A DNA stretch of 63,759 nucleotides, taken from NCBI RefSeq assembly GCF_016432865.1, contig NC_067401.1, positions 481,492,001 through 481,555,759 of the forward strand. Reading direction: 5' to 3'. The translations under genes were made by a program, and so were the position numbers. Of this stretch, positions 53,971 to 56,900 are shown one piece after another. Under the pieces are notes generated by a model. That model worked only from the letters and a program-made list of their open reading frames with translations, had not been told where the DNA came from and ran no database searches. This DNA comes from Antechinus flavipes (taxonomy: Eukaryota). The first letter of the stretch is position 1. Every line of letters begins with the position of its first letter.

Positions 53971-56900
53971 CTGGAAGACAGCCCCCCCAATCTCTCAGAG
54001 GGTTCAAAGGACCCAGCATTATAGGGGATATAGCATATATAGGGGATGAGGTAGCCATTCACCTGCCTCCCTCCGAAAAGTCTGCCTGCCTAATGGATAA
54101 GGCGTTGGTTCCTCAGCCCCGGTGGAGGGGGATTCTCTATCTGAGAAGCTGCCAGGGCTTGGTAGAGTGCAGCCCTTGGAGTCAGGGACAAATCATGGGG
54201 GCTATACTTAATAGCAATGTGAATCCCACTAACTCACTGAACCTTACTCAGTTCCTCCCTTGTAAATGAGAGGGATGGATTCTAAGGCCCTTTCCAGCTC
54301 TGGTGTAGGATCCCATGATTCTGGATTTTCATGGACACCACCTTTTCTTCCATCTCATTCCAACCCATCCCTCAATTTCAGCCCACTTTCACCCTATCCC
54401 ACCTGAAAAAAATAATGTTGACCCTGGGATCATCACCTGGGGAGCCCACACAGTGGACACAGTTGACCCTGGGATCATCAGTTCAGAGCTGAGAGGGATA
54501 CCCAGGTCATTGGGTCCAAGAACATTAGTTCAAGATGATGGGAGGTAGGAGGGAGGCCAAATGGTGGCCCGGGCAGAAGAACTGGATCCACAGACTATTA
54601 TTTAATAAATCCGAGTCCAGTCTCGAGGGAGATCTCCAGTGGAGTGCCCCAGGGAGCTGTCCTGAGTCCTGGGCTATAATATGCTCAGCAGTGATGGAAG
54701 GGACACGGCTCCAGACTAATGCGATGGAAGGGCCAGCTAGAGCGATGGGCCACATCCGGTAAAATTTGCTAGGGGCTAAGCTAAGGCTCCACAGGGCAGT
54801 TACCTCTCCCAGAAGGGAGTCCAGCTCATCTTTATTCAGGATGGTCTCAGTCCGAGAAGGCTCTCCGCTCACCTGGGGTGCAGAGAAGTGAACGTCAGCC
54901 CAAGCTACACGAGCAGCCTGTCCGAGGGCTTGTCCTGCCCTCCGGGAGGACGGCTGCCTCTCAGTAGATCAATGGGTTTGGGCTGAGGACCCCGCTGACC
55001 TTCACGGGCTCCAGGGCCGAGATGCCGGAGCTCACAGTATCCTCTCCGGGATCATGGGTCAGTGCCCACCTCCTGCCGTAGGAGGAGGGAGCCACCATTT
55101 CTAACTGTCTTTCCCACCTTTCTTTGGGACTGGTCCCACAGGCTCAAAGGGGCTTTGTCACGAGCTCCCTCTGAACATCTGGGGAGCCCTGTGGATGAGG
55201 CGGCTTGGAGAGCCCGCAGCAGGAAGATGAGGTTACTTTAGTCAGTTAAGAACCTCTGGGAGGGGCAGTGGATACAGCATCAGCCTGGAGTCAGGAAGAC
55301 TCATCTTCTGAGTTCAAATCTGACCTCAGATATACTCTGTGTGACCCTGGCCGTGTCACTGACCCTGTTTGCCTCAGTTTCTTTGTCTGTAAAATGAGTT
55401 GGAGAAGGAGATGGAAAAAGCCTCTTTGCTAAGAAAATCCCCAACAGGGTCATGAAAAGTCAGACATAACTGAAAAAATGCCTGAACAATAGGAAAGTTT
55501 ACTTAGTTAAGGCATTCACCAATATCTTCTAGACTAACTTGAATTCTAGATGGGGCTTGGTCCCCTTCGGTCAGCTCCGTACTAAGCCTCCCAGCTTCCC
55601 TTCATTTCCAACGGACAGTGGCTTATGAAGCCACGTGCCCGAAGCTCCCTCTGGTTCCTGGGACGGTTCCGGGCAGCTCACACAGTGGACAGCTCAGCAT
55701 TGCCCCGTCTCCACAAGGAAGGATTTCCTAGACTTTGCAGGGTGGGAACCATTGCTCAGGCAGGGTTTAGGAAGTCTCAGTAGATGGATGAGTTTGGGCT
55801 GAGGGCCCCACTGACCTTCACGGGCTCCAGGGCTGAGATGCTGGTGCTCAGAGCATCCTCTCCGGGAAGGAGGACGGGGGCTTGGGAACAGAGTTTGCAC
55901 TTGACAATCCCCCTGAATCGGGAGGAAAGGACAGGGAGAGTAGCTAGAGATGCTCTCTGGCACAAGCCAAGGCTGCTAATGGTTGGGTGGAAGGTGGGGT
56001 GAGCTGGGCTTGTGGGCAGCGGAGCAGAGGCTCGGGTTTCTGCCACAGTAATGTTTCCATTCCTGGGGAAAGGCTTGGCTTCCCAAGCTCAAGGTAACTA
56101 GGTTTGAAGAGCTTGTCCCAGAGGAACCTCCTGTTTCTATAGTCAGAGATAACCTTACATCCACTCTGATGTCTTTTAAAAATGTAGTTTTGTTTATATC
56201 ATTAAATATTGCTTAACTACATTAAATTTTTTTAAATTTAAAAAAAATTGACTCCCAATTCTCTCTCTCCCTCCTATCCCTCCCTCACCCCTTGAGAAGG
56301 CGAGCAATTCTGATGGTTTTTTGAGCATTCTCTATTTTGGTGCCCATTCCTCGATGGAAGCCCAGGACATCTTCCCCACCTGGCCCTGGACTTTCCTCTG
56401 GACCATAAATTCCCAAGTTACTCCTCCATCTCTTCCCTTCTAACCCAAACTCAGTAACTCCCACAAAGGTGGGAAGGCCCCATAATGCCTGACACCCAAA
56501 GAAATGCATCTCTAAAGGCAAAATCTCAGCATCCTTTTAGCAGGTGGGCAGGGGTGCCAAAGGTGCCCAACGGTCCCTGAAATCGGGGATCTCGGGGGTC
56601 CCTCCCTGGGCCCCAGTGGAACCCCTTCATTCTAGCAGGCTTGCTTAGCCCGGCAGCCCCGAGACCTCACTCACCCTGTGCTGTTGGAGTCAGCTGGGAA
56701 ATGGCAGTGCCAGTGGAAGGCCCCGGAGCACTGGGCACAATGAAGCACGTCCTTACTTCCTTGGCAGACCCCACACTGCTCTTCAGCTGAGAGCTGCTGC
56801 TACAGAGAGACCCCATCACCAAGAGGGCAGTTTGGACACGTGAGCAGACCATACGATGCGTCCCCTCTCCCCATCTGGCCCCCAACAGCCAAAGCTGTTC

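Follow-up and report, generated by a model that had tools for sequence, protein, structure and literature searches.

AIRE controls thymic self-tolerance, and mutations of the zinc ligands in its second PHD finger (PHD2) act dominantly in humans and mice. In the marsupial Antechinus flavipes, intron 12 of this gene contains a second copy of a part of exon 12, with an apparent acceptor and donor of its own. The locus raises the question whether this segment, called here 12b, is spliced as an alternative to the regular exon (12a), which would deprive PHD2 of its last zinc ligands, or whether it only resembles an exon. From the analysis presented here we consider it likely that a lineage-specific 93-bp intragenic duplication made a pseudo-exon which looks splice-competent and is now drifting neutrally.

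Organisation of the gene and of the repeated segment

The window, i.e. the whole 63,759-nt stretch of contig NC_067401.1 that we analysed, carries a complete AIRE gene on its minus strand; tblastn with devil AIRE as the query puts exon 1 at 63718 and finds the stop near 53893. The nearest AIRE orthologue among those retrieved is that of the Tasmanian devil, Sarcophilus harrisii. Exon 11 (56799..56675, 125 nt; Pfam PHD profile and tblastn with devil AIRE) ends in phase 2 and encodes the first six zinc ligands of PHD2, and exon 12a (55912..55816, 97 nt; splice translation, PHD profile and alignment with structure 2LRI) carries the CKLC that closes this finger. It is followed by exon 13 (54872..54804, 69 nt; tblastn with devil AIRE and splice translation) and by exon 14, which starts near 53985; these exons and all intronic features described below lie on the minus strand. 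A FAM183/CFAP144-type gene (about 52002-53890) is found directly downstream of AIRE and occupies the same place in the devil (13806-13957 of locus L001), so that this neighbourhood is common to at least the devil. Runs of N occupy positions 6195-6448, 10633-10840 and 61661-61859 of the window.

Repeat search and local alignment agree on one direct repeat, in which 54959-55051 and 55775-55867 are identical at 83 of 93 positions with no gap, just as the earlier note on this DNA had claimed. The source copy (55775..55867) takes in the final 52 nt of exon 12a, the GT of its donor and 41 nt from intron 12, which also confirms the described coverage of the 3' part of the exon, the donor and about 40 nt of intron. 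The derived copy (54959..55051) lies within intron 12, 816 nt downstream from start to start and today about 720 bp from its source. The ends of the repeat are sharp, with similarity stopping at 93 nt on both sides, and blastn over the whole window found no copies of exon 12a and its flanks beyond these two. The description of 12b as a duplicated exon 12 does not hold in this respect: what was copied is only a 93-nt part, which became joined to intron sequence already in place.

The second copy is genuine and no artefact of assembly. Six DNA-like runs, from three coded organisms and two studies, carry the locus; single contigs of runs X1, X3, X4 and X5 span the derived copy at single-copy depth (positions 53600-57000 compared), and two devil assemblies (loci L001 and L002) have it at the orthologous place.

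Between the two copies lies a marsupial SINE (55283..55480), shared with the devil. Its depth and copy number are very high in each of the four runs, and contigs break there; from its devil orthologue it is 2.5% diverged, much less than the surrounding intron (7-13%). A microhomology candidate at the borders of the repeat, the 9-mer CCGTCCTCC beside both copies, did not score above shuffled sequences (61/300) and was rejected as evidence of mechanism.

Splice signals and reading frame of 12b

The candidate pseudo-exon (55072..55000) is 73 nt long: its first 21 nt are intron outside the duplication, and the other 52 nt are copied exon. It has phase 2 at entry and 0 at exit. Its acceptor region (55097..55073) reads ctccctcctcctacggcag/G, with the AG at 55074-55073 and a tract of 14 pyrimidines per 20 nt, compared to 17 for 12a and 15 for exon 13; a second in-phase AG follows 3 nt downstream, inside 12b at 55071-55070 (CAG GAG/G, a NAGNAG acceptor). 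The donor GT at 54999-54998 (GTGAAG/gtcagc; GC in the devil) matches that of 12a from -3 to +5 (AAG/GTCAGC) and differs at +6. Neither the acceptor nor the first 21 nt of 12b have any similarity to 12a or its flanks, in accordance with the claim that the 5' part of the segment is unrelated and brings its own pyrimidine tract and acceptor.

Both 12a (97 nt) and 12b (73 nt) leave 1 modulo 3, entering in phase 2 and leaving in phase 0. Spliced translation shows that the 11-12b-13 combination is open, as is 11-12a-13, that 11-12a-12b-13 reads EVGTDP and then a stop, and that 11-13 stops immediately; the boundaries and phases of the 73-nt exon, its open frame between exons 11 and 13 and the EVGTDP-stop after 12a had all been read correctly from the sequence before. 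The open reading frame over 12b has 45 aa, and the read-through frame of exon 13 has 115 aa; word searches with the two gave no match, in a collection where eukaryotic frames as short as these seem not to be called, so that the result carries no weight for other species. If 12b were included after 12a, its flanking introns would measure 743 nt and 127 nt.

12b is in sum an intronic AG...GT segment that breaks the frame if it is included along with the constitutive exons. Several of its properties count against a neutral reading, namely the good splice signals in Antechinus flavipes with a near-native donor and a 14/20 pyrimidine tract, and the breaking of the frame by double inclusion as well as by double skipping, as in mutually exclusive pairs enforced by frame. 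Two thirds of 12b are real exon sequence, and exonic enhancers may be present there.

Comparison with the Tasmanian devil

At the DNA level the Tasmanian devil served as the outgroup, with two assemblies (L001 and L002), and other marsupials were compared as proteins. The devil AIRE locus is colinear with the window and both copies are present in it. The devil donor of 12b reads GTGAAG/GCCAGC in both assemblies, a change from GT to GC, since GT, being found in the source copy, is the ancestral state. The devil keeps the open frame and an in-phase AG, located at the position of the window's second AG. The splice sites and frame of 12b are thus not all kept where the duplication is shared. Alignment of the orthologous intron, which had been suggested earlier as a check of conservation, accordingly gives a divided result for the devil, in-phase AG and frame being retained and the donor GT being lost.

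The flanks of 12b align between window and devil with about 88% identity and show no similarity to the flanks of 12a, and positions 55185-55123, just upstream of 12b, match a piece of the brushtail possum AIRE model. As the copy ends at 93 nt, its flanks align with the devil and the upstream sequence matches the possum, 12b owes its acceptor and its first 21 nt to old intron. The possum model in question (P0109) reads into intron 12. On the minus strand its extra peptides match the window at 55754-55795 and at 55123-55185, the latter piece being interrupted in the window by an in-frame TGA; more than one marsupial order therefore shares this part of the intron.

At five fixed sites the two 12b copies differ from the two 12a copies, a sixth such site also varies between the 12a copies, and each lineage has about 2-6 private changes. 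Because the fixed differences are common to window and devil, the duplication predates their split, with an age of very roughly 1.75 times that of the split. The peptide ALEPVK is common to 12b and dasyurid 12a, and bilby, diprotodontians and opossums have ALESVK. The duplication is probably specific to dasyuromorphs, a placing which outside the Dasyuridae is drawn from peptides only.

Gene conversion between the copies was considered and rejected, orthologues being closer to each other than paralogues. The CpG in CCCGGA differs between the devil assemblies, with AGA in 12a and GGA in 12b of L001 (9955 and 10771) and the reverse in L002 (8920 and 9736), and these opposite states could result from recurrent CpG mutation or from a small conversion. 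L001 and L002 have 12 differences over 1301 sites in this region.

Substitution pattern

Divergence between window and devil amounts to 6.2% in exon 12a, 8.2% (6/73) in 12b, 9.2% in intron 12 and 10.1% in exon 13, where all statistics on 12b rest on 73-93 nt. The ratio of non-synonymous to synonymous changes in 12b is 3:2 for window versus devil and 4:1 for 12a versus 12b, both counts pointing the way expected of a neutral segment but being too small for a test; the latter agrees with the four non-synonymous changes among five that had been counted in the shared coding part. Against outgroup peptides about two amino-acid changes fall on each branch.

Organism B has two changes in 12b, at 55019 (S>L) and 55050 (P>T), both non-synonymous and both leaving AG and GT untouched, and for organism C no 12b change is found among the differences listed (the list lacking a few contig differences of runs X4 and X5). 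The unchanged AG, GT and frame in organisms B and C carry low power at a divergence of only 1-2%. In a simple neutral simulation with 4.5-9% substitutions per site, 23-54% of the runs retained AG, GT, phase and open frame, and a chance acceptor falls in phase in about 1 case of 3.

Proposed origin of 12b and the predicted consequence of its inclusion

No peptide of the 12b type occurs among 224 retrieved AIRE-like proteins, nine marsupial models included. A metagenome scan gave 0 matches to a 12b-specific junction, and our literature search for marsupial AIRE isoforms found nothing relevant.

From these data the following sequence of events may be proposed. In the ancestor of Antechinus flavipes and the devil a single small duplication put 93 bp into AIRE intron 12, where the insert landed behind a pyrimidine-rich stretch with an AG and so became exon-like, 73 nt long, in phase and open. 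Neutral drift would have acted since then, with AG, GT and frame surviving by chance in the Antechinus flavipes genome and in two close relatives, and with the donor decaying to GC on the devil lineage. We infer that 12b is no regular part of AIRE mRNA, and that any pick-up by the spliceosome would be low-level noise, most of it unproductive, because 12a followed by 12b yields a premature stop after EVGTDP that should trigger NMD. The neutral pseudo-exon, which the earlier note had entered as a caveat, is the better-supported reading in view of the partial copy, the devil donor GC, a conservation without excess, the mostly non-synonymous changes, the lack of 12b in any retrieved model and the frequent survival of intact copies in the neutral simulation.

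The last step of this scheme touches on another explanation, which we find unlikely. 12b may act as a poison exon that joins 12a in some transcripts, the stop after EVGTDP then leading to NMD or to an AIRE without the C-terminal activation region, so that AIRE output would be lowered, either accidentally or as regulation. With both exons included, two more exon junctions indeed follow the premature stop; the signals for splicing are intact and near those of 12a, and flanking introns of 743 nt and 127 nt are both workable. The same segment, however, is conserved no better than the intron around it and has lost its donor in the devil, and since efficient inclusion would cripple an essential tolerance gene, such an effect could be weak at most.

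A related case comes from the human gene, where a deep-intronic AIRE variant reportedly causes APECED via inclusion of a pseudoexon (Ochoa et al., Sci Transl Med, 2024). 12b resembles the human case in being an exon-like stretch of an AIRE intron that would cut the protein short if it were spliced in next to the constitutive exons. It differs in being no disease allele but a partial exon copy that is fixed throughout the lineage and has splice sites of native appearance.

A possible acceptor for exon 13 within the copy

It may also be asked whether the copy matters not through 12b itself but by supplying an acceptor. An AG at 54961-54960, among the last bases of the 12b copy, would extend exon 13 in frame by 87 nt (AG and extension together 54961..54873), which are open in the window and encode 29 residues. 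The devil RefSeq model P0225 (XP_031824424.1) has no 12b and uses exactly the homologous AG, giving an 81-nt in-frame 5' extension of exon 13, i.e. 27 residues, with the acceptor CTACTGAG/A (L002 9824-9904, L001 10859-10939). Both devil assemblies have this extension open and in frame, the two species differ there by a 6-nt indel, and in the product the additional residues would sit after an intact PHD2 and before the C-terminal LXXLL region. Nevertheless, we regard it as quite improbable that the copy has this role: P0225 is a computational model whose exons are oddly extended elsewhere too, P0111, the other devil model, takes the normal acceptor, the canonical exon 13 acceptor is much stronger, and the extension stretch, at 21%, is the most diverged of the intron.

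Predicted consequences for PHD2 and the possible use of 12b as an alternative exon

A further explanation is that in this genus 12b is a genuine alternative exon which replaces 12a, the frame removing products with both or neither, and yields a full-length AIRE with a dead PHD2, possibly dominant-negative. Frames and phases fit such a use. Mutually exclusive exon pairs born by tandem exon duplication have reportedly been described by Kondrashov and Koonin in 2001 and by Letunic, Copley and Bork in 2002, and like such pairs 12a and 12b are neighbouring, partly homologous, of the same phases and of equal length modulo 3, and break the frame when both or neither are used. Unlike in these pairs, the homology is limited to 52 of the 97 nt of 12a and 41 nt of intron, 12b has its acceptor and 5' part from unrelated intron, the functional core of the exon (CxxC) is missing from 12b, the donor is not conserved in the devil, and 12b is known from genomic sequence alone.

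In PHD2, a cross-braced C4HC3 finger, the final CxxC pair provides ligands of the second zinc, and exon 12a encodes this pair. Exon 11 alone covers positions 1-33 of the 47-position Pfam PHD profile, and with devil exon 12 added the match reaches position 45 of 47. In an alignment with the solved structure of human PHD2 (2LRI), the KCKLC of exon 12a falls on RCRSC, so that CKLC corresponds to human C472/C475, and in human AIRE C446, C449, C472 and C475 bind the second zinc (PMC3526288). The assignment of the final two zinc ligands to exon 12 is in this way supported by profile, structure and literature alike.

CKLC is absent from the conceptual 11-12b-13 product, which keeps the C-terminal LXXLL/exon 14 part; that a splice with 12b only would cost PHD2 its last two zinc ligands is a sound prediction. 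An effect of such an isoform would be expected, as C446G destroys the PHD2 fold (PMC3526288) and the equivalent mouse mutation, C442G, is a mild dominant negative (PMC8421262). The hypothetical product resembles C446G in losing ligands, the equivalents of C472/C475, of the same second zinc site, but the point mutation has experimental proof and the 12b product is a conceptual translation only.

The earlier proposal of an AIRE disabled in PHD2 and intact at its C-terminus therefore stands in its conditional part, that is frame, CKLC loss and preserved C-terminus, and is not supported as to actual alternative use: no retrieved marsupial model contains 12b, the devil donor is GC and the substitutions look neutral. 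Skipping of the strong constitutive 12a would need a mechanism. The frame filter is present, but we found no inverted repeat of at least 20 nt in 54500-56900 that could act as an RNA selector, and the 743-nt intron between 12a and 12b imposes no steric constraint. The homology covers a part of the exon, the changes in 12b are mostly non-synonymous, the devil has lost the donor and none of the retrieved AIRE models includes 12b. Beyond geometry nothing speaks in favour of the PHD2-dead isoform, and we hold it to be possible but very unlikely. The chance appears similarly slim for its evolutionary variant, that 12b was co-opted in the dasyurid genus so that mTECs or some other AIRE-expressing tissue make a full-length AIRE with unfolded PHD2 and intact CARD, SAND, PHD1 and C-terminal activation region, a dominant-negative or attenuating isoform which would tune central tolerance and would have been lost again in the devil. 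Finally, a collapsed or mis-joined read producing a false second copy has practically no chance in view of single contigs at single-copy depth from four independent runs, with three organism labels and two studies, and of the orthologous copy in two independent devil assemblies.

Implications

If a PHD2-dead isoform were encoded by the genome, it would be a new way of tuning tolerance. Under the reading that we prefer, a drifting pseudo-exon, the present evidence offers a clean and datable short partial exon duplication in an essential gene, decayed in one lineage, which brought an AIRE intron a near-native splice donor and perhaps a spare acceptor. 12b would in this case make a natural minigene-style test of why good-looking pseudo-exons get ignored.

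The locus also gives a warning for annotation, because gene predictors may choose 12b or the extended exon 13. Marsupial AIRE models disagree around exons 10-14 (P0111 and P0225 of the devil, P0001, P0113/P0116 of the wombat and P0117 of the opossum), and faults in the public ones include intron read-throughs, extended acceptors and a skipped exon 12 (Ensembl-type models). This inconsistency suggests that exons 10-14 of AIRE have little transcript support in marsupial annotations. The first codon of exon 13 (window 54871) is GTG (V) in the window and in organism A and GCG (A) in organisms B and C, and alanine is also found in the devil (GCA or GCG).
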